Below are positions 1-59,283 of a stretch of 64,000 nt of DNA, piece after piece. Below the pieces are notes generated by a model that saw nothing but the letters and a program-made list of their open reading frames with translations, was not told where the DNA came from and made no database searches. This DNA is from Phaeosaccion multiseriatum (taxonomy: Eukaryota > Protista > Ochrophyta, other classes): positions 558,001-622,000 of the forward strand of contig OZ218960.1 in the NCBI GenBank assembly GCA_965112735.1, in the 5' to 3' direction. The position numbers were made by a program, and so were the translations under genes. Each line of letters opens with the position of its first letter. Within the stretch, counting starts at the first letter, position 1.

Positions 1-1086
1 CCGAAGTAGGAGGTGAAGAGCTTAGCTTGGAGAGTGGCGCTCATCAGCACCACCTGAGGAGGATGGCAGTGGATGGGCCAGGAGAGTGAGGAGGGGGGGG
101 GGGGTGCACACCCACGCACGCCCATGCGGGGAACGGCAGAGGAGAGGAGAGGAGAGCAGAGCAGAGCAGAGGAGAGGGGAGGAGAGGAGAGGAGAAAAGA
201 CTTCAGTCCTGTGCGCTGCTACTGACAGAGCCACAAAGACACATATAGACACAAACCCTTGTTCTTGTTCTTCCTTCGCCTCTGTCTCTGCTGGCCCCAC
301 CCAAAGCTCTTCACACCCTCACGCTAATCCCCGCCCCTGCCACTGCGCCTTTGCCTGTGTGTGCCTGTGTGTACCTCTGTATACCTCGGTATGCCTCTGT
401 ATACCTCGGCATGCCTCTATATGCCTCTATATGCCTCTATATGCCTCTGTCTGCCTCGGCATTCCTCTATATGCCTCTGTGTGCCTCTGTCTGCCTCTGT
501 CTGCCTCTGTATGTCTCGGCATGCTTGTAAATGCCTCTATATGCCTCTATATGCCTCTGTGTGCCTCTGTCTGCCTCTGTATGTCTCGACATGCTTGTAA
601 ATGCCTCTATATGCCTCTGTATGCCTTTATATACCTCTGTATACCTCGGCATGCCTCCATATGCCTCTGTCTGCCTCGGTATGCCTCTATATGCCTCTGT
701 GTGCCTCTGTCTGCCTCGGTATGCCTCCATATGCCTCTATATGCCTGACCTTGAGCTCTGGCCTGCTGGGTAGGAGGTCCCTAAGCAGCACAAGGAGAAA
801 GTCCGTGTCCAGCCCACGCTCGTGCACCTGAGACGGGGGTGGATGGCAGTGGATGGGGCAAGAGGGGGTTAGGGCAATAGAAGGGGATCCATTCACTCAC
901 CTCACCCACGCTGCCACTGACCCCATCTACTGCCATCCCCCTTACCCCATCCACTGCCATCCCCCTTCCCCCTTTTCTCCTCCATCCCCATTTACTGCCA
1001 TCCCCCTTACCTCGTCCACAATGACGTGCGATACGCCGTCCAGAAGGGGGTCTGTGGACAGCCTCCGCAGGAGAATACCTGACACA

Positions 1087-1138
<52 letters not shown>

Positions 1139-4100
1139 AGACAATGCTGGATTTTTACGTGCGTGTGACTGAAACGTCTGAAACGCCTTCTTGCCTGTGG
1201 TCATGAAGGTGAGCCTGGTGGCCCTACTGACGCGACTCTCCAGGCGGATCTGATACCCCACAGTCTGCCCCACGGCCTCGCAGCGCTCCTGAGACACGCG
1301 CTCGGCCTGACAGCAGGTAGGGGTGGATGAGGAGGTATATAGGGAGGGAAGGGCGATCAAACTCAAACTAAAACAAGAAAACGTCCCTTCAAGGGCAGTG
1401 CGTAGAGGTTAGAGTTGGAGGGTGGGGTAGGGAGGTAGATGGGTGGGTAGGTAGGCACCCCCCTCCCACCCTCCATTCTGCTTTCCCCTCCTGAACTCGC
1501 TCACTTACTCACCACCCCGACCGCAGAGATCCTCCTCGGCTGTGTGCAGAGGATGCTCATCTGCCCCCCCCTGCCTTGCTCAATAGCCTCATCAAGTAGT
1601 AGCTGGGGTACCTGTTGAGAATAGTGAAGAGAGACACACTGTTGCTCAGCTGTTGCTTAGCTGTTGCACAGCGCTCTTGTTTCGACTGAACTGATACCTC
1701 TCCAAGTACATGCAGTCGTAAGAGTCTTTACGCACCACACACCTACCTGCGTGGTCTTGCCGCACCCGGTCTCTCCTGTATTGTGCCAAGCCATCGACAC
1801 ATCGACAAGAGAGAAGGAGCAGAGCAGGTGGTGATACAGCAGAGCGGTTGGTAATCCATAGTAGACCAGAACCCCCATCCATTGCTCCCCTCCCTCTCCT
1901 CTCCTCCCCTCCTCGCTCCTCCCCTCTCCCTCCCCCCCGCCACCCCCTTCCCCTCTCCCTCCCCTCCCCTTCCTCTCCCCCCTCCTTCACCTGAGAGTAC
2001 CACCACTTGATTGTCCCTGACCAGTGTCAGCAGCTCCTCCCTCTGCCCGAGCATTGGCAGAGAGCGGCGCTGTTGCTGCATCTGAGCGAACCTCTCCCCT
2101 CCGCCGCCCCTCCGTTGGCGCTCGTGAGCTGCCAATAGCTCTGCACTAACCGCGGCCACCTGCCAGCCACGCGGTTTCCAGTTTCAGCTCATATTAAAGA
2201 TCGTATCGTACAGCCATACCATTCAGTGTCTAGGGCATCGACATCGGTGTCGAATGGAGTAAGTGCAGTTTGACAGAGAGACAAAAGAGACAGGGGGGCG
2301 ACAGTTTCAGAAAAGCAACGATGGGAGGATAGGTCATCGACGTACCTGCTCCGGCGTTTGCTGCCGTCGGCCCCTCCCTTGGGCCCTCTGTTTATAGCCT
2401 TGTCGGATCCGCTCCAGCACCCGCAGGGCAGCAGCTTCCTCCTCCTTCCCCTCGTCCTCCTCGTCCTCGTCCTCCTCGTCCTCGTCCTCCTCTTCCCCCT
2501 CCTCCCCCTGCCCCCCCCCCTCCACCTCCTCCTCTTCCTCATCCCCCTCCCCCTCTCCCTCCCCCTCCACCTCCTCCTCCGTCGCGGGTGGTGGTGGGGG
2601 ACGTGCGGATAAGGATAAGGCCTGGAGTGCATCTGTCGCCCCGTTCTCCTCCTCCTGTTGCTCCTCCTCCTCCTGTTGCTCCTCCTGCTGCTCCTCCTCC
2701 TCCCCCTCCTCCTCCCCCTCCTCTTGCTCCTTGTCCACCACTCCTACTGCCGCTACTGCTGCCGCCGCCGCCGCCGCCGCTGCCGCTGCTCCTGCCTCCT
2801 TACGTGCTAACAGCTTGTTCGCCTTCCTCTCCTCCCTGACCCAAGGGGGCTCCTCTTCCACAATGCACAGCACATCACCGTCAGCCACCCTCCCTAGCGA
2901 CGCTACAAAGGCCCCGCACTCACCCGCCTCCTTGTCCACGAGCCTTGACACAAGCAACAGAGGATGGCAGTGGATGGAGGTAGGGGGGAAGGGGTTGGGC
3001 GGCTTAACTGACTGACTGACTGACTGACTGATTGACTGACTGACGAACTGACTGACTGACTGACTGACTGACCCACTCACTGACTCACTGCCTGACTGAC
3101 TCACTGAGTGACTGACGTGAATAACTGACTGACTGGCGGGCTGACTCACTGAATCACTAACTGACGGAATGACTGACTGGCTGACTGGTTGACTGACGTA
3201 CTGACTGACTGATTCTCTCACTGACTGGCTGACTGACTGACTGACTGACTGACTGACTGGCTGACTGACTGACTGACTCACCTCATCCCCCCGGCCTTCT
3301 TCTTGACCCTGAGCTTCGCCCTGACCATGTCAAGCAGCTCTTCCATCGGTAGACCCCTCTCTAACACGAGCAGTTTCCGCTCCCCCATGTTGGGGCGTTG
3401 GTGCTCCTTCTTGCTCTTCTTAGCTGCACACACCTCCACTCGCACCTTCAGCATTGGGATGGTTTTGTTCAGTGGGAGGAGGGAGGAGGAGGGAGGAGGA
3501 GGAGGAGGAGGGGGAGGGAGGAGGAGGAGGAGGGGGAGGGAGGAGGAGGAGAAGGAGGAGGAGGGAGGAGGAGGGGGGAGGAGGAGGAGGAGGAGGAGGA
3601 GGAGGAGGAGGAGGAGGAGGAGGAGGAGGAGGAGGAGGAGGAGGTATATGGGCGGGACGGGGGGGGATGGATGAGGGCACGGCACAGACGAATGCTTAGC
3701 CCACACAATGTAGGATGGCCTTGAGCTTGACACACAGCGTGTGGTAGTGCGATAGGACAGATAATGTGGTAATGTGGTGGTGCGGTGTCCACACAGAGGC
3801 TTCGACATTCATGTCGTGTCCATTTATGGTGTTCGACATTCTTTTTTCTGAAACTGAAAACTGGTGTCCGCGCTCCCTTTTCTGTGACAAACCCCTCTTA
3901 CTAGCAAGCATACGTAGTGACACCCGCACCCCCCCCCCCCCCCAAGTATTTATACATACACACACACACATACACACACACACACACACACGCACACACA
4001 CACACACAAACATCCAAACACACGCACACACACACAAACATCCAAATACACACACACGCACACACGCACACACAAACATCCAAATACACAAACATCCAAA

Positions 4101-5875: not shown

Positions 5876-6007
5876 CGCGAGTGCCCTTTGCCCACGAGGA
5901 GCGCAGGAGAGAGATTGAAGAGAAGGGGGAGCTCTCAAGATCGGTCGTCGCCAAAATGCGTACCACCACTTCTCATACATCGTCTCGCCTCTTCTTCTCT
6001 TCTTGCT

Positions 6008-8582: not shown

Positions 8583-11500
8583 TCACCCATCCGCCTCTCC
8601 CTCCTTCCAGTTCAAGGCACGGAGGAGATCCCCCACCACCATGAGACTGCCTGTGGCAAGCACCTGCATCTTGCCTCTTGGCGACGGCTGTACTCCTCTT
8701 TCTCCTCCTCCTCCTCCTCCTCCTCCTCCTCCTCCTCCTCCTCCTCCTCCTTCTCCTCCCCCCTCTTGCACTGTCCCCACGCCCTCCAACCTCCTCCGCT
8801 TCTTCTTGCTCCTGCTCTCAACACCTTCTTCGCTGGTGGCACAATCCTCCTTTGTCGCTGCCTTCACCTTCGCCGCCCCTGTTGCGAAGGCGCTCAGTCG
8901 GTGCACCAGCTCCAGCGCGGCCGCCCCCGCCCCTCCCCCCCCCGGCTGCTGCTGTTGCTGCTGCTGCTGCCCTGATCCTTTAGTGCCATCCGCCCCCTGT
9001 TTCCCTGATCCTCCACTGCCATCCTCTCCTCCCCTCCCCTCCCCCCCTCCTCCTCCCACCACCTCCACCACACTCCTGCGCACCCCTGCGTTATCCTGCA
9101 GGGCCGTCCACACTTGCCCGCACGTCTGTTGCCATTCCGTCCCCGCCCCGCACGTCTGTTGCCATCCCACTCCTGCCCCACCTATCCCGGCACTATCCCC
9201 CTCCCCCTCCAATCCCAACGGAGGCGGTACTGGTGCTGGCAAGGGTATGCCACTGCCTGCCAACAGCTCTGCGGCACTGGGCAGACTGAATCGAGACGGT
9301 CTCCCCGACGCTTTGAAAAACAGCACCACGTCGAACAGCGGAGCAGAGAGGACTTTAGGCTCCTTCTTATCCTTCCCTTCCCCGGCGGGGGGGAGCTCCA
9401 CGCCGCCTACACCACCACCACCACCACCTCGCCCTCCCCGCCTGGCCCCTGCCAGGGTGGAGAGCAGCGCTACAACGCCTCTCTCGTGGCTGCAGTTGAA
9501 CACCAGTGCGCGCAACGGGCCGTCGCCGGAGTCGGTATCGGAATTGGAATCGGAATCGGAATCTCCCCCCGACGGTGGAGAGGCTGCGAGGAACCACTCG
9601 AGGCAAGCACGCATGCTCTCTTGAGTGTGCGCTCCATCCAGAAACATGTCCATGCCGGGCCGGGAGAGGGTCTGTGGGGTGGGGTGTGGTGTGGTGTGGT
9701 GCGAGGAAAGGATGTGAGGGGGGATGGCAGTGGATGGGTAGAGGGGGGGCGGAATGGGGTGGGATAGCAGTGGGTGGATGGAAGGGGAGACGGAGAAGGA
9801 GGAGGAGGAGAAGGAGGAGGAGGAGGAGGAGGAGGAGGAGGAGGAGGAGGAGGAGGAGGAGGAGGAGGAGGAGGAGGAGGAGGAGGAGAAGGAGGAGGAG
9901 GAGGAGAAGGAGGAGGAGAAGGGGGAGAAGGAGAGTCATGCCACAGTCAGGCCACAGTCAGGCCACATGTCAACAAGGAAGTCTTACGACACGCTGCTGG
10001 GAATCACTCACAAGGCCGCTCAGGGACCGCTCAGGGACCGATCCACGAGAGCGTTGGACGGACAAACACACCCACTCACCCACTCACCCACACACCCATG
10101 CACCCACGCACCCACGCACCCACCCACGTACACTCACCCACCACCCACCCACCCACCCACCCTCCAAACCACCCACCTACCCACCCACTCACTCACGCAC
10201 CCACGCACCTGGCACCTGCCCGGCCAGCGGCACCGTGCCAGGCCCTCTCTAACAGCGGCGCTGTCACAAAAGGCCTCCCAGCTCTCTGTCCCCCCCTCTG
10301 TCGCCGTCTCTGTCTCTGTCTCTGTCTCCATATCATCCGCCGCCTTCTTTGTCGCTGTGTCTGCTGTGCTGCCGTCCCCGTCCCCACCCTCATCCGCGCT
10401 GCTGTCGCTCTTCCTACCCCCCACCCCTCCGGTGGATTCTCCTTTCTCTTCTCTACTCCTCCTCCTCCTCCTCCTCCCATCCACTGCCATCCTCCCAGGG
10501 GTGAAAGTGGTGGGTGTATCTAAGGTGGTGGGCACGCCATCGGGATGGTGTTGTGTTTCTGTTCCGACACGCACCCCAAGCTCCTCTGCGCAAAGGGCGA
10601 TGGCGAGACCTGCATTGACGCGCTGGTGCTCGCCCGCGAGTCCGACCATCAGTACATCCTCTTCGCCATCCACTGCCATTCCATCCCCGCCACCCCCCTC
10701 CCTGCCCCCTGCCCCCGCCCCCCCCCCTCCCTCCTCGTCGTCTTCCTCCTTCCCGTCTTCATCGTCCTCCGATCGTCCTCGCGCTTCTGCTTGCTGCGGA
10801 TCCACCCTCACTCGCCGCCGCCGTCTCCTCCTCAGCGTGGGCGCGAGGGTGAGGGAGGTGTGAGCATCCTTCCCGCACTGCCTTAGGACTGACAGGCCAT
10901 TTGAGTCGCTGGGCTGCTGCACGGAGTAGGCGGGGCTGTGTTGCTTCAAGATACCACCCTTCTCCCACGCTATCTTCTCGATAGTGTTGCCTAGCACCTG
11001 ACAGAGAGAAGGGGGGGAGGGGAGGTGTAGTAGTAGGAAGTGGAGGTGGTGACGGTGGTGGTGGTGGTGGTGGTAGTGGTAGTGGTGGTGGTGGAGGAGG
11101 AGGAGGTGGTCGTGAGGTGAGTGGTGAATGAGAGCAGAGCGGTAGAGCCGAGTGAGTGAGTGAGTGAGTGAGTGAGTGAGGTGAGGTGAGTGAGAGAGAG
11201 AGTGAGGGAGGTGAGGTGAGTGAGTGATGTAAGGTGAGGTGTGGGTACACCTCCCGTGGGGGGGGGGGTGCCCATGTGCGCGAGGAGGGAGTGTGTGTTG
11301 CATGCTATCGATCATAGATAGATCGATAGATAGATGTACAGATAGAGAGATAGAGGTGAGCACGCGCCCACGCATAGCATGCACCCACACACGCACGGAC
11401 GTACGCACGCATCACACATGCCCCCCCATGCTCTAGTACCATCTAGTGCCATTTAGTCATACCTGAGTGTGGTCGAGGTCCAGCAGCGTTACTCCGCAGC

Positions 11501-13246
11501 ACACGGGGGCAGGGATGACATTGGTGGCGTCGTATCGCCCGCCCATGCCCACCTGCTCTCTCGACATATATATACAAGGACGAGAAGTCGAGGAGGTCGA
11601 TATACGTTAGACATTGAGCGTGTGACTGGGAGTGTGTGTCTGTTTGGAAAGGACACCAAGCACTAAGCACATAGGCCCCATGTCCCGTACCATTCTTAAC
11701 ATTGTTGACATCGACATCGATACTTGATGTAGACATTCTCTCTCGATAGTCAACCCCTCTTCCCCTGACTCCTCACTCACCTCCAAGACCAGCACGTCGA
11801 CATTCTCATGCACAAAGACCCAGAGGCCCACCAGCGTCAGCAGGCGGAAGTAGTTGGGCATCGGTGGGGGGGGGCGCGGTGGTGCCTCAGAGTTCCCTGA
11901 CTCCTCCCCCTCCTTCCCCTGGTCCTTCTTGTCCTCCGCCCCTCTCTCCTCCTCCTCCTCCTCCTCCTCCTCCTCCTCCTCCTCCTCCTGTTGATCTTTG
12001 GTGGCCTGCAGCTTGTCCCATACTTGGAAGAAGTAGCTGCAGCAGCACGACCGCCGGACACATCGATCGGAGCAACAAAAGAGACGTGGGGGGCGCGGGC
12101 CAACGGGTGAGAAGAGTTTAGGGGGGGGGGTGCAAGGAAGGACAGGACAGAAGGACGAACGGACAGAAGGACGAACGGACGGACGGTCACGACAGAAGGT
12201 GAGGAGGAGCACTGCTATCACCATGATGCTATCACCGCACAGGAGGGCGGATAGACAGAGCATGCCGCGAAGAAGCACCAGGGAAAGGCGAAGATTTCAC
12301 AGATACCACGCCCTGCCCTGGCCTACCCATCCATTGCCATCTCCTGCCCATCCCCTCCCCCCCCCCCCCCTCCCCTCTCTCACCGTGCGAAGAGGGCCTC
12401 GCTGATTGGCTTGCCGCCTATCCGCAGCCTCTCTCGCACAGTGACGAGGTGCGGTGACGAGAAGAGACCGGTGCGCCGACCCCTGTGCCTCAGAATGGCC
12501 TCTGTCATGCATGCGGTGCTGCCCTTACCCTTGGTGCCTGCGGGGCCACGGGCGACGCAGAGAGGCAGAGAGCAACACACCGGTTTAAAGAGGTCCCGTT
12601 GGTTGGTTGATTCCCTACTCGGCGTCTACGCGATAGGATTGATTCCTTGGTTCTGTACAGGAGGAATGAGAGAAGTTCTGTTCTGCGCCTCTGGCGAACG
12701 AAGAAGACAAGGCCAGAGCTTCCTTCGGAAGGGGCGGATGTTTACGGAGACCCCTCCTGTCTCCTCTTTTGCTCGTCTCACAGAGGACACTCTCACATCT
12801 CTTCCTCCCGGCACTCTTCCTCCCGGCAGGAGCCCCCACACCACAAATTGTGTCTGTAGGTCCCGTTCCAAAAGAGACATCAAGCACCGGAGCCCCAAGT
12901 GCATCCAAGTACCCTGGTTATCCCCTCCCTCCTCCACTCCCCACTCACCTGTGATGTGAATGACCCGAAGGCGGGAGATGTCTAGGCCCAGGCGCCGCAG
13001 GTAGTGTTGCATCGCAGGGACGGTATGTTTTCGTTGCTGGGCCGCCTTGTCCAGTGCAGCCCCACTGGAAATTGTGCCGAACAGCAGCGCCTCCGCCGCG
13101 GAGAAGGAGCGACTATTGCTGCTTCTGCTGCTGGTGCTGTTGCTGCTGCTACTGGCGACGGTGCTATTGACGGTGCTGCTGGGGCTGTTTGTAGTGACAC
13201 CATCGGCTGCTCCGTTCATCACCTTGTTGGAGCCGACGCCGTGCAT
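8583..13246 (-). CDS. FPGS: Folylpolyglutamate synthase, ~6 exons
   Basis: IHIT|GTKGKGST (P-loop), [28 protein letters not shown]|[19 protein letters not shown]|[43 protein letters not shown]. Confidence 0.95.
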
Positions 13247-13681: not shown

Positions 13682-15989
13682 ATGAGACGCCCCTGGACGC
13701 TGGCCTTTCTGGGGCCTGCCGCCTTACCAAGCCTACAGGGAGGCGATGCCTTCGCTTTCGGACCGCCTCAGGCGCCACACACCTCCACTGCCACGCGCTG
13801 GTGCCGACCGCGTGGTTCACCCCAGCGCCCCATAGAGTCACACAACGCACGGAGGAGCAAAAATCAAGCCCTCAACAGTCAGAGCAAGCCGGCCGTGGTG
13901 GGAGCGGTGCTGCGGGGGGCGTGGGAGGACGCCCAGGAGGAGTACGAGGTGGTGGAGCTGTCGACGGAGCAAAGGGACAAGATGCGCAAGTGGGAAAAAG
14001 CAGATTTGTCGGAGGTGAGTGAGTGAGGGAGGTGCAAGAGGGAGGGGAGCCAGTGCAACCCGAAGCCTATTTGCTCTACTCCTACCTCTTTTGCCTTCGC
14101 GCTTCATGACAGTGTCTGCCCGCCCTTTATGTGTGTCGTCTTAGTAGTCTCCTTCCACCACCTCGGCATGATGCTTTGCTTGTTCTCTCTATCTCTTGCC
14201 TTCTCTCATTCGTTCTTTCCTCGTTCGTTGGCTATGGCTGGGCGACCGCGAGTGTAGGCAGAAAAGGTGAAGGCGATGCTGCAGGAGGAGGAGCGCCAGC
14301 AGAAGCACCAAGAATACATGAAGCTAGTCAAGCAGAACAGAAAAGACGCCGCCAAGAGGCAAGCGAGGAACATGAAGAAGTTCTTCCGTCGAAAGGCTAT
14401 GGTGGATGTGGCGAGAGCGTCTGAGAAGAAGAGGGGCCTTGCGTACGCGCAGTCCGTTCAGTGGGAGAGGAACTACACACAGTCTGTGGAGGATCTACAG
14501 GTGAGCAGCTAGTGTAGCAGAACAGGTAGTGCTGAGCAGACAGAGTAGCAGCACTCAGCAAGTTGCAGAGCAGCAGTAGCAGAGCACGCAGGGAAAGGGA
14601 GGAGCGGTGGGTGACGGGGTAAGTGAGGGGGACTGGACTGGTGCGTGGCGGCCGACAGTGTGGTGCGACATTCAATCATTCAATCAATCAATCAATCCAG
14701 AGCAGACTACACCACAGCCAGTCTAGTGTGTGACGCGTAGGCTTTTGCAGGCCTTTGTATTACGACCCCGATGTATGTCTACCTCCGCCCCTTACGTACT
14801 TCCCTTCCCCTCCCCCTCCCCAAAGGTGGGGCAGTGGCTTTCGGGGAGAGTACGTAACGTACGCCCCCACGGTGCATGGGTGGACGTCGGCTGCGGCACC
14901 GACGGACTGCTTCACGTCAGAGACATGTCGGAGGGTTTCACCCCCAGTGTGCAGGACCGTGTCAAGACCGGTGACAACGTCAATGTAACCGTCAAGTTCG
15001 TTGACCTAGACTCGGACACGCCCAGGTGGGTGGGGTACCTTGGGTGGGTACCTGCCTATGCGTCGTGTCTCAACCACCGACAACCGCACACCCCTGTCTG
15101 CCTGCCTGCCCATGTACCAGCTGCCCATCTGCCTGCCTGCTGGCCTGCCTGTCTGCCCACCTGGGACATCTTGCACCGTCCACTGCCTTCGACGCGACTT
15201 CCTTCCTCCAACAACGTCCCCCCTCTGCGCTCTGCTGCCTGCCTCTGATGTGCTGCGTCGCCTGACCGCTGCTGCTGTATACCAACATCTGCGGCTGCTG
15301 CTCCTCGTGCGGCCGTCTCCTGCCATCTATCTCATCCCTGCATTCTGCTGCCGTTTATCAACATGTACAGGTTCGGCCTGAGCCTGGTGCCTGTGGCGGT
15401 GCCCGAGGTGCTGCAGGAGGCCCAGCGCGCTCTGAGCAGGGCCATGGGCTCCGACCGGCCGTGGTGGTTGTTCACGGAGGGGGAGGAAGTGTGGGGCTAC
15501 GTCACCAAGGTGGGTGGGTCGATTGACTTAGTGACTAAATGGATGAGAGGGAGGAGGACGGGAAAGAGAGAACGACGAGGCATTTTCTTACTCTCACTGC
15601 GTGCGTGGGAGAAAGCGGCAAGCAAGGAGCCTGCCTCCCTCCCTCCCCTTTCCACGGAGGGCGTCAACCAACTAGAACTCCATCCTCTCCCCGTGCGACT
15701 GTGCCCCCATCCACTGCCATCCATCCATCCATCCATCCATCCATCCATCCACTGCCATCCATTCAGGTGACGAACTTCGGCTTCTACGTTGAGGTGGGGG
15801 CCGACATTGAGGCCTTCCTCAACCTTGTTCACTACGACCGACGCGACAAGACGAGAGGGGCCCGGCAGCACCCCTCGGAGCTGTTGGCTGTTGGGCAGCG
15901 CATCAGAGCTTACGTGTTGGACGTGGACGGGGAGGCCGACAATGGCAGGTGCGTGTGTGCGTGTGTGTGTGTGCGTGCATGTGTGTGTG

Positions 15990-40883: not shown

Positions 40884-40932
<49 letters not shown>

Positions 40933-45101: not shown

Positions 45102-45173
<72 letters not shown>

Positions 45174-46933
45174 ACACACACACGCCCACACGCGCACACG
45201 CCCGCACACACCCACCCGTCCGTCTCCTTCGAGGTCGTTGTCGGCTAAGGCGTCAAGAGAAGCAGCCACAACCTCGTTGTACGCATCCTGAGGGGGGGTG
45301 GATGGCAGTGGGTGGCAGTGCGTGGGTGTGGGTGGGTGAGTGGGTGGGTGGGACGAAGGAAGGCCCTGACTGTGCCCCTACCTACCCCTTTCCTTCCTTC
45401 CTTCCCACCCACCTACCTACCTACCTACCCACCTACCTACCTACCTACCCACCTACCTACCTGCCTCCCTACCTACCTACCTACCTACCTACCTACCTTC
45501 CCACCAACCTACCTACCTATCTACCTACGGACCTACGGACCTACGGACCTACCTGATCGTTGAGCACCCCCTCAACGAAGAGCGCCAAACAGGCAGAGAA
45601 TAAGACGGCTCCGATGAGAACAAATCCCACTACAAAGAGCATCGTCTGCTCCCCCTCGATGCTGAACATGTCGAAACCCACACTGGGGCAGTTGGTGACA
45701 CAGTTGATGTAACAGTTGCGATGAAGTTGGAGATAGAGTTGATGACATGGTGGAGCAGTGCCAGCGGGAGGCGGGGGAGGAGGGGGGAGCGGGGAGTGAG
45801 AGGAACGAATTGGCAGCAGCGGCAGAAGCAAGCAGCAGTTCGTGACACAACAGCACGAGGGAGGTAAGAGCCTGATAGGCCATCCGAGAGTGAGCTGGGC
45901 ATGCAAGAAGGAGCAGCAAGGCCAACCGTTCACGAGCTGCCATCTAGGCGCCACCTACACAGCTAAGCTAAGCACAGGCTCGGCTCGAGGGCAGCCGCCT
46001 CGGCCTTCACGCTGTCCGTGCTCGGAATCTCGAACACCAATACAACTCGAGGTCAAAGTCGAGGTCAAAGTCGAGGTCACATCCTTTACCTCAGGCCAGC
46101 CTGCACGGTGAAGCAGAGAGCTTGGCTGGCGTCGAGGCCGGAGTAGAGGCGGAAGAAGAGAAAGCCGGTAAGGGCCCAGAGCAGCGTGACACCGGCAAAG
46201 GTGAGCCTGAAGCGGCCCAGCAGCGTCACTCCCTGCCCTCCTTCGCGGCACCCCAGCAGCGACCACAGAGTTGACAGTGACCACCACCGCCCTTGCTCTC
46301 CTGCTCAGACAGGGACAAGGACAGAGAAGGGACAAGGACGTGGAAGGCCAGACGAGGCCCACCGCGGCGGTAGGAGCAGCAGAAGAAGGACAATTGAAGG
46401 AGCAGCAGCAGAAGGAGGATTGAGCGCCGAGGACGGGGATCAGGTAGAGCGTGAGTCGCTCGCGGCCTTTTATCCGGAGACAGAGAGAGAGAGAGAAGAA
46501 AGAACCCATCATGTCCTTCCCCACACTGGACACTCTAATCGGCTCTTTATCATGGGGGAGAGAAGGAGAGGAACTGAGCGAAATCCAGCATCAAGCTCTC
46601 TTTTCACCCTCACTCACCACTCGTCCGATCCTTCTCGCCGCGTGCTCCATCGGTGCACGCTTCAGTTCTCATAAAAGCACTCGACGAGCAGCGCTTTAAG
46701 TTTGCCAATAGTAGGGCGTGGCTCCCGACGGAGGGTCTACGCTGCAGAGTTGCAGGAGCTGCCCCTCCCTCTCCCTTTTGGGCAAACAACGTTGGGGAGC
46801 CAGGCTGAGCCTCCTTCTGCTGTGGAACCTTGCTGAGTGAGCTCCCTTGTGAAGAGCTGCTGGCGCTGCTCCCATCACCCGACCCGTCTGCCAGCAGGGG
46901 CATCGGAAGACTCTTCTCCTCATCATGCTGCAT
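39054..46933 (-). CDS. TPK/KCO-like two-pore-domain (4TM/2P) cation channel with EF-hands, ~13 exons
   Basis: Spliced: TM1 ([16 protein letters not shown]), pore 1 ([12 protein letters not shown]|VGFD), TM2, EF-hand-like DNDLEGDGR|MD and DKKGIG|SLEMNDF, TM3 ([15 protein letters not shown]), pore 2 ([15 protein letters not shown]), TM4, and a TPK-type tail [12 protein letters not shown]|LMTLGRL...[17 protein letters not shown]. All junctions are GT-AG and in phase. Confidence 0.8.
41600..42090. repeat. GA-rich microsatellite grading into a 14-bp minisatellite (GAGGGAGAGACAAA)n
   Basis: Directly visible, intronic. Confidence 0.9.
44195..45215. repeat. Compound (CCAT)n/(CA)n intronic satellite, ~1 kb
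   Basis: Directly visible. Confidence 0.95.
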
Positions 46934-47410: not shown

Positions 47411-49295
47411 CTACTGGCTGGGGCGGCTGCTGCCCGCACCGGCGAGGGCCTCACACACTTGAACAAAGCGTTTGACAGAGGCTTCTCTCCTGTCCCCCAT
47501 GGAGGGCCCCAGGGAGTTGCACACTGAAGCTGAGAGGTACCACACCTCACGCAGCGACCGGCGATCATCACATCTGTCGGGTGGAGAGGGAGGGGAGGGG
47601 AGGGGAGGGAGGGGGGGAAGAGAGAGGGGGGAGGCAGGAGGGCAGGAGGGGAGAGGAGGAGGTGAGGGGGGAGACAGAACCGGGGAAGAGATAGAGGGTG
47701 CTGCTGCGGGGGGGTGGAGGAAGAGGGAGAAATGGTCACTCGATAACAGAGGCACTTGATTAACGTTGGCGGGCAAGGACACAGAGAAGGGAAAGGAGGG
47801 GAGAGAAGGGAAGGGAGGGAGGGGAGAGAAGGGAAAGGAGGGAAAAGAAGGGAAGGAAGGGAGGGGAGATACATGCATGGAGGGAAGAGAGGAAAGGAGG
47901 GAGGGGAGGAAAGGAGGGAGGGGAGGAAAGGGAGGAATGGAAGGAAGGAGGGGGAAGGAAGGAGAGAGACAGAGAGTGGGGCTGTTCGATGGCAGCGGAT
48001 GGACAGAGAAACAGACAAGACGGAGGGAGGGAGGGAGGGAGGGAGGGAAGGAGGGTGTCCTGTCTAACCCCACGCCTGCTGCCCCTTGGCGGCTCGTACC
48101 CCCCCAAACAAACCCAACCACCTAACCACCCCACCATCCATCCACCGACCCACCCGCCCACCCACCTATCGAAGGCCTCTGCGGCTTCCTCGAGGGCATC
48201 CAGTGCCTTCCGCAGCCTCCTCTCCCTCCTCCTCCTCCTCCGCCGCTGCTGCGCCTCTCCTCCCCCCTCGCCCCCCTTGAGACTGACCCCTACAGAGCTT
48301 CCACTGGCACTACGAGTGAGCGTACTTCCCTCCTCCGCCAACAGGCTTTTGGCCAGCGCGAGCCACACCAGCCCCTTCTCCTCTAAGGGGGAGTGCTCGA
48401 CGATGTGCGGTAAGCAGGCTTGCACGAGGGACTTAGCCCTAGGGGTGGAGAGGAGGGAGGGAGGGAGGGAGGGAGTAGGAGAGAGAGGGAGAGAGATAAG
48501 AGTCAGGCACACACACACACACACACACAGAGGGAGAGAGAGAGAGCGGAAGGGTATATTTGATGACTTGGAGGAGTCACCTAAGAAACTGAAAGTGTGT
48601 GTGTGTGTGCGTGCGTGTGTGACAGGGAGGTAGAAAAGAAAGCAAAAGGGTGTCTGCCGCACTTAAAAAGACTCGCGCGTGGCAGAGAGCGTTGCAATGG
48701 GTCCGCAGTCCGCGGGCACCCCGCAGTTCCTTGCCATGCACTACCATCCCCACCCACCCACCCCCAAGACCACTCACTTGGAGGCCTGTCCGAGTGCGAG
48801 TCGCACCATCGCGAGAGTGAGTAACGCCTCCTTGTGGAGCGTGTGTAGAGAGAAGGCCTCGCTCACCGCCAGGCAGCGCAGCAGGGGAGGCAGCGCGAGG
48901 ACTCCGCGGTTGGGGTGTCCACTGCTTAGCTCGGCCCGCGCTTGCTGTGTGGGTATGGGCAGGTAGGCACGTAGGAAGGTAGGGAGGGAGGGAGGGGAGG
49001 GAGGGGAGAAGGAGACAGGGAGAGGAAGGGAGGTAGGCATACAGCGAGGCATGCGGGCAGACAGGCCGTCGGCCGGGGTCAAGTTCACAGCGCAAACTCA
49101 GAGAGGAAGGGGATGGCAGTGGATGGCAGTCCAGTCCAGGGAGAGAGGAGCGGGAGCGCGGGGGAGGACGGGCGGCAAGAGAGACAAGATAGGCATATGG
49201 GCAGCAGGCATATGGGGCGTATGGGTGAAAGGGCAAGCAAGTATATTGGCACACGCGCACACACACACACACACACACACACGCGCGCGCACAGA

Positions 49296-49338
<43 letters not shown>

Positions 49339-49869: not shown

Positions 49870-52800
49870 GTCCTTTCCCTTCCCCTTCGCCCCCGCCTTC
49901 CCCTTCCGCCCCCTCGTCTTCTCCTCCTCCTCGTCCTCCTCCTTCCCTTTCCCGTCCATCTCCTTCTCCCCCTCCCGCTCCATCTCCCCTGCGCCGGTCC
50001 TCCTCTTCCTCCTTCTGCCCCATGAAATGCCATACGCCTCTAGATCCGCTCCCGCCAGAATGGCTTTGATGACATGTGCAACAGCGAGCTGTACCTCCTC
50101 TGCCCCGGCCTCTCTCCCATATACCTGCAGCACGGTACGGGCACCCAACAACGCCTGGAAGGGGTACCCAAAGTCCTGAGGGATGGCAGTGGATGGGGAT
50201 AAGAGGTGGATGAGGATGAAAAGGCAGTGGATGGGGATGACAGTGGCATGGCCGTGGATGGAAGCGGGTAGTGCAGGGCGCGTTAGGTGTGTGTGTGCGT
50301 AGGGAGGAAGTGAGTGAGTGAGTGAGTGAGTGAGTGAGTGAGTGTGTGTGTGGGGGGGGGGAGCTCTCGAGCTCGCACACACGTACTCAGAAAATACAGA
50401 AGGGGGTAGGAAAGACATATTCCTTTTGTTCGGAACATTCCTTTGGTTCAAAAGGAGGAAGACAAGGCAAAAGAAACGAAACCACTGAGAATCGATATTC
50501 CCACCCCACCCCTCCACCCCTCCACTCCTCCACCCAACCACCCCACCCACCCACGCACGCACCCACCAACAACCCACGCACCCACGCACGCACCTGCATA
50601 GCCGCAGCCTCAACGAGCAATCTTTTTGTGGCAATTTGCGCCGCCAGGGCCGCCCGCCGCACCTCCTTCCCCCCTACACCCCCCCCGCCTCTTCCCCCCA
50701 CTCCCCCAGGCCCAGCCCCAAGCACTCCAGTGAGGCCCGCGGTGATGCCTGTATTGAGGTCGAGGTGCAGCCCGAGTGCGGTGGCGTCGCCTCCCTCGGC
50801 CATTGCGAGAAGACCGTAGAGGTGCCGCTCGCCGCTGCTGCTGCTGGCGCCTGTGGGATGGGGTGGGATGGGATGGCAGTGGATGGATAGCAGGGGATGA
50901 TGGATGCCGGGGGGGGGGGGGGGGAGAGTTGCGTGAGTGTGTGTGAGTTCGCCCGTGTGAGTGTGCATGTATGTATGTATGTATGTATGTATGTATGTAT
51001 GTATGTATGTATGTAGGTATGTATGTATGTATGTGTGTATGTATGTGTGTATGTATGTATGTATGTATGTATGTATGTATGTATGTATGTGTATGTATGT
51101 ATGTATGTATGTATGTATGTATGTATGTATGTATGTATGTATATGTATGTATGTATGTGTGTATGTATGTGTGTATGTATGTATGTATGTATGTATGTAT
51201 GTATGTATGTATGTATATATGTATGTATGTATGATGTATCATGCATGTGCATGTATATGTGTGTGTGTTCCGTACCTATTCTGCTTGTGGCGGAGGCGTG
51301 CGCGAGGGACAGTGTGGCGCATGCAGCGACGGAGCTGAGGCCGAGCTCGTCGGCACGCGTGATGCTCCGCCGCAGGACCTCACCCGCCTACAGCAAGGAG
51401 TGAGAAGAAGAGAGGAGGGGGGGATGGTGGGGTAGACAGGGAGTGGGGAGAAGGGGAAGGGGAGATGGCGGATACAGCGGGAGGGTGGACGGGAAGGTGG
51501 GGGGGGTAGAGAGGGAGGGAGGGAGAAAGGGAGGGAGCGGAGGGAGGGAGGGGAAGGGAGGGAGGGGAGGGGAGAGGGAGGGAGGGAGCGGAGGGAGCGG
51601 AGGGAGGGAGGGGAGAGGGAGGGGAGAGGGAGGGGAGAGGGAGGGAGGGGGGGGTATGGCGTGGCGGGTAGGAGGCGGTAAGAGATCAGCAGCAGCAACA
51701 GTAGGGCAAACGACGAGGAGAAGGAAAAGTGAAAGAAAGGGGGGTCCACAACACTTTTGACTCCCTTCCAACTCATGCACGACACCAGCTGCTGCTGCTG
51801 TACCACCAACTGCCCCACCTGCGAGTGCGGAGAAGCCGCCTCAGCCACTGCCGAGTCTCCGTGAACGTGCTGCAGCCACGCGAGGGAGAGAGCCACACAC
51901 ACATGGTCGTTGTGCTGATATGCCACAAGGGGGAGGAGGGGGGGAGGGGAGGCAGGGAGGGAGGTAGAAAGGACAGGAGGAGCAGAGAAAGGCGACAAGG
52001 GCGCAGAGAGTGAGAGGCTACAGAAGGAAGAGAGAATGAGCGAGAGAGAGGAATGGCAGTGAAAAAGTGTGTGTGTGTGTGTGCTTGCTCATGCCGGAGA
52101 GGGCAGCGCAAGCCTCGAACACGTGTGTGCGTGTGTGCACCGTCGCGTCGCACCATCCCGTCGTGACGTGTCACGAGCGGAGAGCACATGCCCCAGAGAC
52201 CCCACCGATACACCTCCAGCATGCCCCCACTTCCACCCCCATCCCCCCCCCCCCCCATCCACTGCCATCCCCCTCTCACCTGCTGCGCCACCCTCATAGC
52301 CTCGTCAAAGGCGTCGATGGCCAAGCGGCGGTGCCCCATGCGGTAGTGAAGCGCCGCCAGAGACAGCACCGCACTGGGGAGGACGTCCTGGGATGGCAGT
52401 GGATGGGAGGGGGGTTGGAAGGCAGTGGATGGGGGTAAGGGGGGAGAGTGGCAGTGGATGAGGATGTGTGTGTGTGCGTGTGAGTGCGTGCGTGAGCGCG
52501 TGTCACACGGCTAAGCAAAGGCCCTCTTTCGATACAGACGGAGAAGAGAGGAGGAGGCACACAGACACGCACTGCCCTTCGAATAAAGTGATAGAGAGAG
52601 AGGAGGGGGGCGAGGGAGAGAGGGATGGAGGGGGGGAGGGAGGACGCTTTGACTGTTTGGCATAGTGTGACACACAAAAACACCCCCCATCCTCCGCCCC
52701 CCTCCCCCCTCCAACCCCTCCTCCTCCTCCTCCCCCTCCTCCTCCTCCTCTTCCTCCTCCTCCTCCTCCTCTCCCTCCTCCTCCTCCTCCTCCTCCCCCT

Positions 52801-55761
52801 CCTCCTCCTCCTCTCCCTCCTCCTCCTCCTCCTCCTCCTCCTCCTCCTCCTCCTCCTCCTCCTCCTCCCCCTCCTCCTCCTCCTCCTCCTCCTCCTCCTC
52901 CTCCTCCTCCTCCTCCTCCTCCTCCTCCTCCTCTCCTCCTCCTCCTCGTCGTCCCTCACCATGCATGACGCGGCCATTCCCGGGTTCGGTCCTCCCCTCC
53001 TCAGGGGATAGTCAAAGTAGCGATGGAGGGCATCCAGTGCGCCCTGCTGCTCTCCATGCCCGAGGCAGTTGAGGAAGCGCAGGTAGTGAGCCCTAGGGAA
53101 GAGTAACAGTTACAGAAGGGGAAGGATTCAGTGTCAGTTTCAGTTTCAGGCTAATAGACGAGATATTGTACACATGGAGATCGAAGGCTTCATTCCTGTG
53201 GCCACTTCGAACGAGTCCCATCTGTGTGCGCGCGTGTGTGTACGTTTGTGCGTATCTCTCTCTCTCTCTCAACTCTCTCTGTGTGTGCATTTGTACATCA
53301 GTGATTTTGCGTGCCTCTTCCCTTCTGTATGTCAGTGTGTGTGTGTGGTCCAGCGACGGGCGTGTACACACATGCGTGCCTCTCTCTCTCTATCTCTCTC
53401 TCTCTCTCTGTGCGTGTGCGTGCGTGTGTGCTGTGCGCTGTGTGTGTATGTGTGTGCCTGTATATATCTGTGTGTGTGCATGTGGTCTGTACCTGGGCAG
53501 GTCCGGGTGTATCTCGAGCATGTCTTGAATGTCGCTCTCAAGCGCCTCGAAGGGCCGCAGGCTCTGCACACCCCTCTCCATGCCATGCACCTGGCATGGA
53601 CAAGGGGGGGGGGGGGTGTTGAAGTTGAGGTTGAAGTTGAGGTTGAAGTTGAAGCTCAAAAGGAGCACATAGCAAGGGAAGGGTTGATGGGTTGAGTGGA
53701 CGAAGGGGAGATACAAGAGCCCATACCCATGTACCTGTTGCTGCAGATGAAGCTGTAACTGCCGTGCCGAGAGCACGCTGGCATCGAGTCTGCTGCCCCC
53801 CGGGCCCAGGTGGGGCCCAATGTGCGTGGTATCCACCCCCCCTGCTGCCCGGATGGGTGTCGAGATGACTGGGGTTCCACCCCCACCCCCATACCGCGTG
53901 GGCAGGCCTGACAATGACGACTGATGTGAGTGCGCAGAGAGAGTGGTGCTGTTGAAGCCTCCTCCTCCTCCTCCTCCTCCTCCTCCTCCTCCTCCGAACC
54001 CTATTCTAACAGGGCTGGGACCCGCGCCGAGGTACGAGGAGGAGAAGGAGGAGGAGAAGGAGGAGCGGAATAATGGGGAAGCTCCTGTCGCCGCCTTGCC
54101 CCCCTTCCCGGCCTTTGCCGCCTCCGCCGCAGCGACACCTCCTGAGCCCCCTCGCCCTCCCCCTCCACCCCTCCCCCCCCTCCCGTAAGGACTGCTGCTG
54201 GTGCTGCTGCTGCTGCTGGTGTTCGCCGCCGTCGCCGCCACCGCCCCTGGGCGTGTCCCCACCGCAGGGCCCCCATCCGAGGGAGTGTGGTGGCTCCGCC
54301 TCCTCCTTCTTGCTCCACCACTGCTCCCACCTCCGCTGCCTAACCCTAACCCCAACCCTAACCCTAAGCCGCTGCCGCCACCGCCGCCACCGCCGCCGCC
54401 GCCGCCGCCACTGCTTCCCAGGCCTAAGCCTAGGCCCATACCGGTGCTGGTGCCACGTGTGGCCGACAAGAGACCCACACGCCCCCCTCCTCCTCCGCCG
54501 CCCATCCGCACGCCGCCCATCACCCCCAGGATGAGGTTGCTGCTGGTTTCTGCCTCGTCGTCGCCAAAGCTGGTGTCCGTACGACCAACACGGCCACCTG
54601 CATTGCCGCTGGTGTCAAGCCCGCCCACGCTGGTGTCTGCGCTGGTGTCGATATCCATGTCGAGGTCGATATCATTGTCGAGACTCATGTCCACACTCAT
54701 GTCCATGTCCAAACTTGTACTCACACTTGCGTCGAGAAGGCCCACACTGTTGCGTCGACCGCCGCCACTACTACTTCTGCCCCCCCCCCCCCCTCCTCCT
54801 CCTCCTCCTCCTCCTCCTTCTCCTCCTCCTCCCCTTCCTCCTACTATGCGACCGAACGCTGCTGTGGCTTCTCTTACTTGTGCTCCTGCCACAGTACGAG
54901 GCAGGGGCCCGTCGAGGGCGGCGGCAGCAGCGCGAAGAGCAGCACTAACACCAGCTGTAGCAGTAGCAGAAGAAGCAGCAGAAGGAGTGGAAGTGACACC
55001 ACCACCTCCACCACCACCACCACCACCACCAGCAGCAGCAGCACGAGGCAGGGGCCCGTCGAGGGCGGCAGCAGCAGCGGAAAGAGCAGCACTAACACCA
55101 GCTGTAGCAGTAGCAGAAGAAGCAGCAGAAGGAGTGGAAGTGGCTCCACCACCACCATCACCACCACCACCACCACCACCACCAACACCACCACCACCAC
55201 CACCACCAGCAGCAGCAGCAGCAGCCGCGGCGGCGCTCCGAGTCCGGCTGCGAGTGGTCCTGGGGGTGCTGCGCCTGGCACTCGTGACTCCGTCCCTCTC
55301 ACGAGAAGGAGTCTCTGCCTCTGCCTCTGCCTTTTCAGCGGACGAACAAGAGGCCCTGCCCTTGGCCTTTCCCCTCGTACCCCTTGCACTGCCACCCTTA
55401 CTGCGCACCCCGCTGTCGCTCTCCCCGATGGAAAAACGAATGAGACCGGAACCTCTGCTGTCTCTTCTTGCCCGCCCTCCACCCCCGCTCAGCGGTGAGG
55501 AGGGTCGCTGCCATCCACTACCATCATCCCCGCCCTGTCCACCTGTTCGGTTCCGCTTGCCTCTGCTGCCTTTCAAAGCGCTGACAAGGACCTCCTCCTC
55601 CTCCTCCTCCTCCTCCTGCTGTGTATCACCAACTGCTGAAGCACCTCGCACACCCTCGCCAATGGCCCTCATGTGCACCAGCCGCCTCACCGCAGCTGCA
55701 GTACTCACCGCCTCCCCACCGCCACCACCATTGGCTGCCATCCCACCACCACCGCCACCTC

Positions 55762-55807
<46 letters not shown>

Positions 55808-56277: not shown

Positions 56278-56317
<40 letters not shown>

Positions 56318-56617: not shown

Positions 56618-57054
56618 CTTCTCTTCTCTACAGTGCAAATTTTTTTCTCTTTTAAACCCTCATTCTATCTTGCTTATTTCCCATTCTTTCTTGCCTCGCA
56701 GCAGCGGCAGCACCTGAGGAAGTTCCACCCTATTCGATGGAGCTCCACTTGTCGTCCGGGGGAGGGGAAAGGGAAAACAATGGGGGGAGGGAAATGTAAA
56801 CAAAGACCCGGCAGTAGTAAGTCAACGATATCCTTCGATCCATCCTTCCCTTGCCGTTTGGGGTGAAGGTGTCGGTGTCGGGCGGCGTCTCACGATCGTC
56901 TCTCCTCCCGATCCTTTGGCGCCTCCTCGTCATCCTCTGTGTGTCTTCGTCTGGAGCCGAAGGGAGGGTAGAGCCCTTGCGTCTATTTACCCTGAAGGTG
57001 GTAACTTCGGAGGAAAAGCATCCATCCCTCCTTCCAGGAAGACCTTCTGATGTT

Positions 57055-59283
57055 ATGGACGTAGGGCTATCCAATGTCGTGCTTCCTTTACCACCAGGCC
57101 TGCCCTCTTCTTCCCTGGAGGAGGACGAGGAATCTGCAGTAGAGGAGGAGAAGGGAGAGGGGAAGGAAGAGAGGACTCAAGCTGATAGAGAACAAGGGAG
57201 TGCCTCACCAAAGGGGGAGACGAATGGCGATCAGCGAGATCTGCAGAAGGAGACGGAGGAGGAAAAGGGAGAGGAGACGCTCGACACAGTAGTGGGAGGA
57301 GGAAAGGAAGAGGCCGTTCCGGAGAAGGGCCAAGAGCAGGTGGAGGAGGGGGCGAATCGGGACGGAGAGGAGGGAGAGAAGAGAGTTGAAAAAAAAGCGG
57401 TGGCAGGAGGAGGAGGAGGAGGAGGCCTTGAGGAGGCCTTTGCGGAGAAGAACCAGGAGAAGGTGGAGCAGGAGAAGGTGGAGCAGGAGCCGAACAGGTC
57501 TGACGAGTTGGGGTCGAATGCATGGCGCTTCGCGGCTTCACCTTTGGGGGCCCTCCAGCTCTTCATGGCGGCACCAGACCGTGCAGCTGTGGCCAAGGCC
57601 TTCGCACTCGTCTTCGCCTGCAGGTACCGTACGGCGATGCAGGTGGATGGCAGTGGATGGTTGATGTAGGTGGATGACAGTGGATTGGTGTGTCGTACCA
57701 GCGAGGCGAGCGAAGCCCAGAGGTACCCACTGGGTGGGAACTGTGTACCCGCTGCGGCTTGCTTTGCTGGCAAAAGGAGACGTTGTGTATGTGAATGGTG
57801 TTTCTCCTTGTACGTGCGGAATGGGTCATCGCTCTCTCTCTCTCCATGCTCTGTGGCCTTTGTTGCCCTCCCTCACTGGAGCCATTTGCGCCTCCACCCT
57901 CCAAGCCCCCTCCCACCCCGCCGCCGCATGTGGTGATCGAGCCACCTCCCCCCCTCCGCTGGCCCCCTCTTGCTTATCCCTTTCCCTATCCTATCGGGCC
58001 TAATCGGTGCTTTGGCTTTTTGTCCCCGGCCTCTCTAGGGTGCCTGATCCTTTTTTCGCCCCCCCCCCCCCCCCCCATCCACTGCCATCCCCGGAGCAGA
58101 CAGGAAGAGGTGGTACCTGCGTCTCTGTTGGAGTGGATGAACGATAAGCTCGGTCTCGATCGGGACGCGGGGGAAGCAGAGGCATTGGTAGGGGCCACTC
58201 GAACAGCCATCGCTGAGGCCGTGTACTGTGGCAAGGTGGAGGTAAGGGAGAAGGAGGAGAGGGAGAGAGGGGGACAGGGAGAAGAAGGGAGGGAGGGAGG
58301 AAGGGAGCGAGGAGGGAGAGAGACTGAGAGAGAGGGGGAGGGGGGGGGGACAGACGGAGAGAGTAGAGAGAGAAGAGAGAGGTTCTGATTCGTTCCTTCC
58401 CTTCTTCAAAGTCCCAGTGTGTCATGCAAAGCTCTTGATTGAAAGGCATTGACTTACTGGACTGGGAGTAAGGTCTTGCCTCACCTCCGACGACGTACCC
58501 CACGTGTTGTTCTCCACGCCACCACTCTCCCGTGCCTCTCCCCCCCCTCCCTCCCTCCCTCCCTCCTTTGTCCCCTCCCCTCCACCTCCCCCACCCCTCC
58601 TCCCCGCCCCCTTGGCTATACAGGACCTACACCTCGCCTTAGAGGAAGACGGTGTCGAATTAGACCCCCGCCTGCTTCGGCTCCTGACCGAGCTCGTGAC
58701 TGCTGAGCTTCCCAACTGGCGACAGGCGGCAGAAGCACAGCAAGTCAGAGGGGTGGACGGTGTGGCTCGGCTTGTTGGGGTGGAGTGGCAGGTGGGGGCG
58801 ATCACGAGTAGCGCAGCAGCACGGCATTTGGCGGCACCGCTCGTGGCAGTACGGCTGAGAACGACGGCCCCTGCTGCTGCTGTATCACCAACTGCTGCCT
58901 CTGCTGCTGTGACCCCTTTGCAACGACAACGAGAACAACAACAGCAACAACAACAAGAAGAAGAAGGCGGAGGAGGAGGAGGAGGAGGAGGAGGAGGAGG
59001 AGGAGGAGGAGGAGGAGGAGAAGGAGACGGAGGAGGAGGAGGATCCTTGGCAGCGAGCTCGAGCTCTGCGGCGGGTGTGTTGTCACTGTGTCGGCAGCAA
59101 GAGGGGAGAGGGGCGGGAATTTCCTTCGAGGTGGCGGAGGAGGGCCTGGCAGAGCTGATTCGCATGTGTGAGAGTGTAGTGGAGTCGTTTCAAAGGGAAG
59201 GAGAGGGAGGGGGGGAAGGGGGGGGGGGCGTGGAGTGTGGCGTAGTGAATAGTGTTGATGGCGTAGGGGAGAGGGTGAGATGA
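57055..59283 (+). CDS. COMM-domain protein, COMMD9-like, 3 exons
   Basis: LDPRLLRLLTELVTAELPNWRQAA...ARLVGVEWQVGAITSSAAARHLAAPLVAVRL...ISFEVAEEGLAELI is a COMM domain. Approximate exons: 57055-57642, 58104-58241, 58624-59283. Confidence 0.75.

Follow-up and report, generated by a model that had tools for sequence, protein, structure and literature searches.

The 64,000-nucleotide (nt) stretch of the Phaeosaccion multiseriatum genome analysed here, referred to as the window (assembly GCA_965112735.1, contig OZ218960.1, positions 558,001 to 622,000), holds seven genes whose introns share Motif B, a 16-mer (GGATGGCAGTGGATGG) built on the scheme GGATGG-CAGT-GGATGG. Named on the sense strand of the host gene, the word is called the G-form and its reverse complement the C-form; the RNA versions are CCAUCCACUGCCAUCC and GGAUGGCAGUGGAUGG. 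As a DNA word of only 16-18 nt, Motif B is dispersed and present in both orientations at the DNA level, and it is kept almost only within introns and only where its orientation fits a polarity that nearly all the introns share.

Genes and intron models

The seven genes that host the exact copies lie on both strands. Those for a DEAH helicase, FPGS, SAICAR synthase, a two-pore channel and APC5 are on the minus strand, while an S1-domain gene and a COMM-domain gene are on the plus strand, the last having a weak COMM_domain profile match in the exon next but one after the intron at 57624-58099. Genes and strands were assigned from three-frame open reading frame (ORF) pieces and conserved motifs or exons, and frame-consistent GT/GC-AG introns were located by an anchor-guided dynamic programme. 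The boundaries it gave were usable, yet some of its GC donors were doubtful and it placed false exons in repeats, (GGA)n among them; therefore, a set of 30 introns was curated by hand, all of them from the seven motif-bearing genes. No dynamic-programme path was obtained for the SAICAR synthase gene, the introns of which were curated by eye. Junctions were corrected by hand where conserved motifs fix them, and exons were searched one by one. The splice sites used throughout rest on reading-frame continuity across conserved protein motifs and are in this sense homology-based. A self-trained codon model was dropped after it drifted into purine-rich low complexity, and a filter on GC content at third codon positions (GC3) was uninformative.

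Matches to known proteins were found in exons beside several of the boundaries. The helicase exon after the intron at 828-1010 opens at HER.. and aligns to DHX9 HERDINTDFLL, so this intron splits the DEVH box (DEV/HER, the slash marking the junction here and below); the exon before it aligns to a Drosophila DExH-type helicase (PDB 5n8r, CG9323) and to MLE. The FPGS exon upstream of the donor at 12383 aligns to FolC residues 62-106. Two exons that start right after a C-form acceptor, from 15767 and from 28632, match S1 (profile 16-65) and SAICAR_synt (profile 81-101), respectively, and ANAPC5 is matched by the exon at 52280-52387, which has a C-form acceptor on one side and a G-form donor on the other. 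At another helicase junction, FMTTG/ILLRRL (1079-1194, minus strand), the conserved frame demands a GC-AG intron with the donor CAG/GCAAGAAG.

Copies of the word

The window contains 18 exact copies of Motif B, compared with none in 100 dinucleotide shuffles, and 37 copies with at most two mismatches, compared with 0.10 expected. An earlier reading of this DNA made from the letters alone (the sequence-only reading) had listed the 18 positions, all of which matched exactly, and had cited near copies that were also recovered, at 923 (one mismatch), 12327 (two), 45300 (one; given there as 45299) and 57672 (two; given there as 57671). Its assignment of 17 exact copies to introns of seven genes on both strands agrees with the homology-based models. 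Thirteen are C-forms (61, 841, 2962, 9722, 15707, 15745, 28641, 28701, 49111, 50181, 50871, 52391 and 58075) and four are G-forms shortly past a donor (947, 41023, 52255 and 57645). The remaining exact copy, at 10477, is a G-form within a long FPGS reading frame.

Motif B is the most widely dispersed complex (non-microsatellite) word in the window, occurring as a single 16-mer with unrelated flanks at 14 dispersed loci, as against a few short arrays. The arrays detected by Tandem Repeats Finder are short and degenerate, at 40967-41058 (periods 10 and 22) and 920-972 (period 24), and the word is 1.6 times as long as the 10-nt unit GGATGGCAGT. Between adjacent GGATGG hexamers the spacer CAGT occurs 18 times and every other spacer once, (GGAT)n and GT-repeat arrays aside, which argues for one specific word and no loose G-rich pattern. 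The flanks are G-rich only, with no conserved extension, and the word adjoins (GGAT)n, poly-G and other simple repeats. One perfect stretch of 30 nt, comprising the word and poly-G, was found by blastn to be common to the introns at 51915-52279 and 57624-58099, in opposite orientations. Homopolymers of G or C of 12-16 nt often abut the word (58059-58074, 52243-52254, 28717-28730 and 12350-12365).

No relative of the word was identified. An Rfam scan of the window gave no match, metagenome contigs scanned with an 18-mer yielded 28 single-copy loci, a number at chance level, and a literature search did not find the word, returning 12-mer matches only in unrelated papers, evidently by chance.

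Position and polarity within introns

The word-bearing introns and the copies in them are as follows.

54..749, minus strand: DEAH helicase intron (RPELK/VVLMSATL), exact C-form 61-76, 7 nt from the exon, motif III (SAT) continuity
828..1010, minus strand: DEAH helicase intron in DEV/HER, donor GTAAGG, G-forms 988-1003 (two mismatches), 947-962 (exact) and 923-938 (one mismatch), exact C-form 841-856, 13 nt before CAG/
2944..3281, minus strand: helicase intron filled with (CAGT)n, exact C-form 2962-2977, 18 nt from the exon
9672..10208, minus strand: FPGS intron, C-forms 9722-9737 (exact, 50 nt from the exon) and 9762-9777 (two mismatches)
12037..12383, minus strand: FPGS intron, donor GTGAGA, G-form 12327-12342 (two mismatches), 41 nt past the donor
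15510..15766, plus strand: S1-domain gene intron, exact C-forms 15707-15722 and 15745-15760 flanking (ATCC)n, the second 6 nt from the exon VTNFGFYVEVG
28633..28956, minus strand: SAICAR synthase intron, exact C-forms 28701-28716 and 28641-28656, the latter 8 nt from the exon VFPVEFVMRGY
40328..41069, minus strand: two-pore-channel gene intron, donor GTAAGG, degenerate G-form array of 10-nt period 40967-41058 (exact copy 41023-41038), 11-100 nt past the donor
45288..45552, minus strand: two-pore-channel gene intron, C-form 45300-45315 (one mismatch), 12 nt from the exon DAYNEVV
47704..48145, minus strand: APC5 intron with a low-confidence acceptor, C-form 47987-48002 (two mismatches), about 143 nt past the donor
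48439..48777, minus strand: APC5 intron, donor GTGAGT, G-form 48734-48749 (two mismatches), 28 nt past the donor
48945..49338, minus strand: APC5 intron with a medium-confidence acceptor, exact C-form 49111-49126, mid-intron (54%), 166 nt from the exon
50176..50593, minus strand: APC5 intron, C-forms 50181-50196 (exact, 5 nt from the exon DFGYPF), 50219-50234 (three mismatches) and 50246-50261 (two mismatches)
50851..51275, minus strand: APC5 intron, exact C-form 50871-50886, 20 nt from the exon
51915..52279, minus strand: APC5 intron, exact G-form 52255-52270, 9 nt past the donor GTGAGAGGG, then G12; the upstream exon matches ANAPC5
52388..52959, minus strand: APC5 intron with a (GGA)n 5' arm and a C-rich 3' arm, C-forms 52446-52461 (three mismatches), 52417-52432 (one) and 52391-52406 (exact, 3 nt from the exon)
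57624..58099, plus strand: COMM-domain gene intron, G-forms 57645-57660 (exact) and 57672-57687 (two mismatches) past the donor, exact C-form 58075-58090, 9 nt from the exon and preceded by C16

Positions were counted for non-overlapping copies with at most two mismatches across the 30 modelled introns. C-forms lie in the 3' half of the intron in 17 of 18 cases, ten of them ending no more than 20 nt from the exon. The 11 G-forms are all confined to the first 40% of their introns, and none was found in any 3' half. The only copy against this orientation rule is the two-mismatch C-form at 47987, in an intron with an uncertain acceptor. The earlier statement that no intronic copy has the opposite polarity, made on the exact copies, is confirmed.

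The copies are also placed close to the splice sites. The sequence-only reading had put the C-form close before the exon, often at 3-20 nt, which is where 9 of the 13 exact C-forms end; the others end at 44, 50, 68 and 166 nt, the copy at 49111 being mid-intron. The sequences it quoted between C-form and exon (CAG, CTCAG, ATTCAG, TCCTCAG and GCCGCCAG) are all present. Where an intron has a C-form in its 3' half, the nearest one is within 20 nt of the exon in 10 of 12 introns, a result matched by none of 20000 uniform placements in the 3' half. The first G-form is within 41 nt of the donor in all six introns with a G-form (p=0.002), and G-form offsets from the donor are 7-87 nt. The farther a copy is from the 3' splice site, the more mismatches it tends to have (rho 0.57, p=0.007): 11 of the 14 acceptor-nearest copies are exact, compared with two of the seven distal ones.

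Pyrimidines make up 12 of the 16 bases (75%) of the C-form, which is free of AG. In the curated introns, AG is missing from very long zones before the acceptor, often of 100-600 nt, which fits an avoidance of AG in C-rich 3' arms genome-wide, and CTNAC candidates were found upstream of the proximal C-form in seven introns with an acceptor-near C-form. At these homology-based sites, the layout is that of intronic splicing signals, with G-runs less than about 100 nt past the 5' splice site and an AG-free pyrimidine tract before the 3' splice site. By inspection only, the C-form was dismissed as the site of the branch point, since each of its three A residues lacks a U at -2. A TA[CT] branch-like motif lies just 5' of the C-form in about half of the copies; this observation is weak and unformalised and was not relied on.

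A few copies fall elsewhere.

9009..10681, minus strand: sense-strand G-forms in long FPGS reading frames, at 10477-10492 (exact, RMAVDG), 10666-10681 (one mismatch, GMAVDG) and 9009-9024 (two mismatches)
34072..34087, minus strand: unplaced copy with two mismatches, adjoining (CAA)n in a long minus-strand ORF
38159..38174, plus strand: unplaced two-mismatch variant GGATGGCAGTCCATGG, with a local duplicate (three mismatches) at 38121, in unannotated DNA upstream of an ankyrin gene
55511..55526, minus strand: unplaced copy with two mismatches, within a 1089-codon orphan ORF

The copy at 10477 had been described as the single exonic copy and a G-form. It is indeed a G-form in a reading frame; together with those at 10666 and 9009, it would fit either an exonic low-complexity insert or an in-frame intron.

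A general G-to-C gradient and the density of the word in introns

The orientation of Motif B follows a compositional rule of the introns as a whole. With the 30 introns each divided into tenths, GC skew declines continuously, starting at +0.62 in the first and reaching about -0.6 in the ninth. The 60 nt next to the donor have more G than C in 24 of the 30 introns, the 60 nt next to the acceptor have more C than G in 29, and introns without the word obey the same rule. At the DNA level the rule is symmetric, as the C-rich strand runs 5' to 3' towards an exon whichever of its two flanks is considered. The 5' ends of the introns contain 48% G and 11% C, a bias that would make polar any word composed of nine G and one C among its bases. 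In its polarity, Motif B is thus one instance of this general architecture. A literature search did not find a G-to-C intron gradient described in algae, and the literature on intron repeats of Emiliania huxleyi gave nothing usable.

It had been proposed that a special role of the word would be contradicted if its polarity were fully explained by the general intron skew and it were equally dense in intergenic DNA. The first of these is what was found, as the polarity equals the general skew, but the second is not, as the word is far less dense outside introns. Per kilobase (kb) of G/C-rich tract, its density is 5.4 in the curated introns and 0.36 elsewhere, a 15-fold difference, and 17 of 23 loci are in curated introns although these make up 26% of the G/C-rich tract (p=2e-6). 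This test is conservative because unannotated introns count as outside.

Both results bear on the possibility that Motif B is a neutral micro-repeat without a function of its own, a by-product of the evolution or repair of G-rich and C-rich sequence, from which selection on strand composition removes the copies that point the wrong way. The equality of word polarity and gradient speaks for this, and so do the merely G-rich flanks, the (GGAT)n, poly-G and other simple repeats beside the word, the G-forms in purine-rich low-complexity coding stretches of FPGS, the fact that most introns lack the word, and the other short words that pervade the genome. The 15-fold enrichment over other G/C-rich tracts, however, is not expected from it, nor is the crowding of copies within 20 nt of acceptors, far above uniform placement in the C-rich half, or the exactness of the acceptor-nearest copies with mismatches growing with distance. 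We consider a neutral origin of this kind possible, though the less probable outcome.

Proposed pairing between the intron ends

As the word and its reverse complement occur at opposite ends of introns, the sequence-only reading had suggested that the two ends pair and loop out the intron. In its wider form, this means that G-rich 5' arms pair with C-rich 3' arms, joining the splice sites and looping out a repeat-filled interior. There is a precedent in teleosts, where (AC)m-(GT)n repeats co-occur across the same intron above chance and have a stability beyond composition (Lin et al. 2016, PMC4691745). In the window, the duplexes between 5' and 3' arms (arms of at most 80 nt) are indeed strong, with a mean of -47.5 kcal/mol against -29.8 for 5'-5' and -14.4 for 3'-3' pairs, and 20 of 30 introns have at least ten bridging pairs in the minimum free energy (MFE) fold. 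In the introns at 828-1010 and 57624-58099 the exact copies pair over the full 16 nt in the MFE fold.

However, neither of the features seen in teleosts, co-occurrence above chance and stability or bridging above composition-preserving controls, was observed here. Both forms occur together in only these two introns, compared with 2.2 expected (Fisher p=1). Counts of GGG and CCC across introns are uncorrelated (Spearman 0.12, p=0.54). Arms from the same intron pair no better than arms from different introns (-47.4 kcal/mol) or than shuffled arms (-51.5 kcal/mol), and real introns have 22.6 bridging pairs against 26.0 in block-shuffled ones, with an equal MFE (-104.7 against -107.7). Arms that flank an exon are complementary in the same way, and pairing between them would promote exon skipping. 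The proposal of self-complementary ends was thus not borne out, as co-occurrence is at chance and duplexes and bridging are compositional, and we regard intron bridging as unlikely. The two forms of the word are independent and not partners.

A G-quadruplex reading of the word (GG-AT-GG-CAGT-GG-AT-GG) was rejected, as ViennaRNA with G-quadruplexes enabled predicts none.

Comparison with introners and other known systems

Another suggestion of the sequence-only reading was that the two forms are the terminal inverted repeats of an introner. Introners are intron-generating transposons of Micromonas, Aureococcus and many others (PMC9860276), recognised by introns of unrelated genes with similarity that starts within ten intronic bases of both boundaries (Gozashti et al. 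2022, PMC9860276). The G- and C-forms would then be the inverted-repeat ends of an introner or of a remnant of a miniature inverted-repeat transposable element, the interior of which has decayed or been replaced by microsatellites. The existence of introners in other algae, including stramenopiles, makes this conceivable, and a perfect inverted word pair does lie near the ends of two introns (828-1010 and 57624-58099). More broadly, as with introners, an aquatic alga has one sequence that recurs in many introns whose genes are unrelated.

Similarity that reaches both boundaries was not found. In an all-against-all blastn comparison of the 30 introns, matches were 17-38 nt long and centred round the word, with one gapped match of 77 nt (79% identity) that spans neighbouring copies. 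The word lies within 10 nt of the acceptor in six 3' ends, none of which also has a common 5' end. No target-site duplications of 3-6 nt flanking the word were found beyond the cross-copy control rate. The distance of the word to the splice sites is variable, its flanks are not conserved, and the inverted pair is present in only two of the 15 word-bearing introns, as by chance. The other 13 have a single form, and decay cannot explain the missing partners because seven of the 13 have an intact C-form and lack a G-form even at three mismatches. Unlike introners, then, the window has no family of near-identical introns, no target-site duplication and no fixed register to the splice site, and the claim of terminal inverted repeats is not supported by these observations. 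An introner origin appears very improbable to us.

The arrangement is closer to that of the GC-rich (GGG)m-(CCC)n introns of humans (Lin et al. 2008, PMC2481429), which likewise have G-rich elements just past the donor and C-rich ones ahead of the acceptor, with independent arms. In human LCAT, G-rich 5' and C-rich 3' intronic elements have additive effects for which pairing is not needed (PMC2481429). Unlike in humans, the pattern here is near-universal (24 and 29 of 30 introns), is a monotonic gradient over the whole intron and is found in a stramenopile alga. Instead of degenerate triplets, the leading complex constituent is one exact 16-mer with its reverse complement, the splicing role of which is a supposition of ours. 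With the teleost introns, the window shares complementary simple sequences at opposite boundaries and predicted hairpins that join the ends; here, unlike there, co-occurrence is at chance and stability is compositional.

The C-form also resembles a canonical polypyrimidine tract with an AG exclusion zone, being a pyrimidine-rich, AG-free sequence between CTNAC and the acceptor. The canonical tract, however, is a degenerate compositional signal and is U-rich in most eukaryotes, whereas an exact C-rich 16-mer is seen here in 10 of 30 introns.

Other features of the window

The next most dispersed complex word is the unrelated CAGTTGGTGATACAG family, with 18 copies at no more than one mismatch (7355-8148, 23438, 24100, 26576, 32622, 33429, 49717, 58880 and others), mostly in CAG-repeat coding stretches, in sense orientation and reading QLVIQ. 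Like Motif B, it is exact and short, has sharp borders, is tied to a simple repeat and shows no hallmarks of a transposable element. Unlike Motif B, which is intronic and polar relative to splice sites, it is mostly exonic and in sense.

A stop-free ORF of 1089 codons (53393-56659, minus strand) has no Pfam family and no relative in a word-indexed protein search, and is either an orphan or a low-complexity gene. An intron of the two-pore-channel gene contains an array of about 1 kb (44171-45168) with about 37 copies of a 26-nt unit, CATCCATCCACACACACACACACACACC; the array is located in the 5' and middle part of the intron, and its sense strand is the G-rich one. The ankyrin-repeat gene has a 198-bp tandem duplication (36321-36725, two copies, 89% identity), and a search for contigs that encode its ORF returned no match.

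A possible role of the word in splice signals

We favour, with moderate confidence, the reading that Motif B is part of the splice signals of these introns, with the C-form in the role of a pyrimidine-tract element and the G-form in that of a G-run element, each being kept where its orientation fits. This would be in line with the earlier proposal of a lineage-specific splicing element, which remains the best fit to the intron specificity, the closeness to splice sites and the decay with distance, although the splicing role itself is one that we infer. The C-form is in the position of the pyrimidine tract, past CTNAC branch-like motifs and 3-20 nt from the acceptor, and would most likely be part of that tract or of the 3' splice-site signal. 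The G-form, at 7-90 nt past the donor, would act like a G-run intronic enhancer, and the two intron ends would act independently. Acceptor closeness, the gradient of decay and intron specificity together suggest that it is the proximal C-form that may be functional.

A single word that serves, as its own reverse complement, at two ends that are independent points to copying at the DNA level in either orientation, followed by an orientation filter. The copying could be by templated repair, gene conversion or slippage. One word that is mirrored in this way would argue against two independently evolved protein sites as well as against pairing. Both the contribution to splicing and the spread at the DNA level are inferences from the distribution of the word.

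Several points weigh against a role in splicing. No C-form was found in the 3' half of 18 of the 30 introns, which have generic C-rich tracts instead, so an intron can do without it. Nor is there a fixed register, the distance to the AG ranging from 3 to 50 nt. Polarity alone is uninformative on function because the gradient would polarise any G-rich word. As all the introns belong to the seven genes that bear the motif, the share with the word may be overestimated. The splice sites, the branch points and any effect on splicing are predictions from the DNA, and the copying mechanism is conjectural.

A more far-reaching version of the splice-signal reading, which we find doubtful, sees in Motif B an ultra-short 'splice-signal cassette' under active propagation. 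The exact 16-mer would be installed and homogenised by acceptors, and its mirror by donors, through templated repair or gene conversion between introns, and a lineage-specific, sequence-specific factor, either a protein or a small RNA, would read CCAUCC-ACUG-CCAUCC. If this were true, Motif B would be a splicing signal that moves or evolves in concert, at a size well below that of every known introner.

To summarise, Motif B resembles known polar G-rich/C-rich intron signals and is unusual in being one exact, dispersed 16-mer. Splice-proximal signals are normally degenerate, whereas this exact 16-mer is found within 20 nt of the acceptor in 10 of 30 modelled introns of this intron-rich alga. 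The near-universal G-to-C gradient of the introns is a strong and simple feature, which could be exploited by gene predictors for this lineage. The word would offer a sharp, testable handle on the recognition of 3' splice sites outside animals, fungi and plants, and it bears on how short sequences may spread and stay identical over thousands of unrelated introns without a recognisable transposon.

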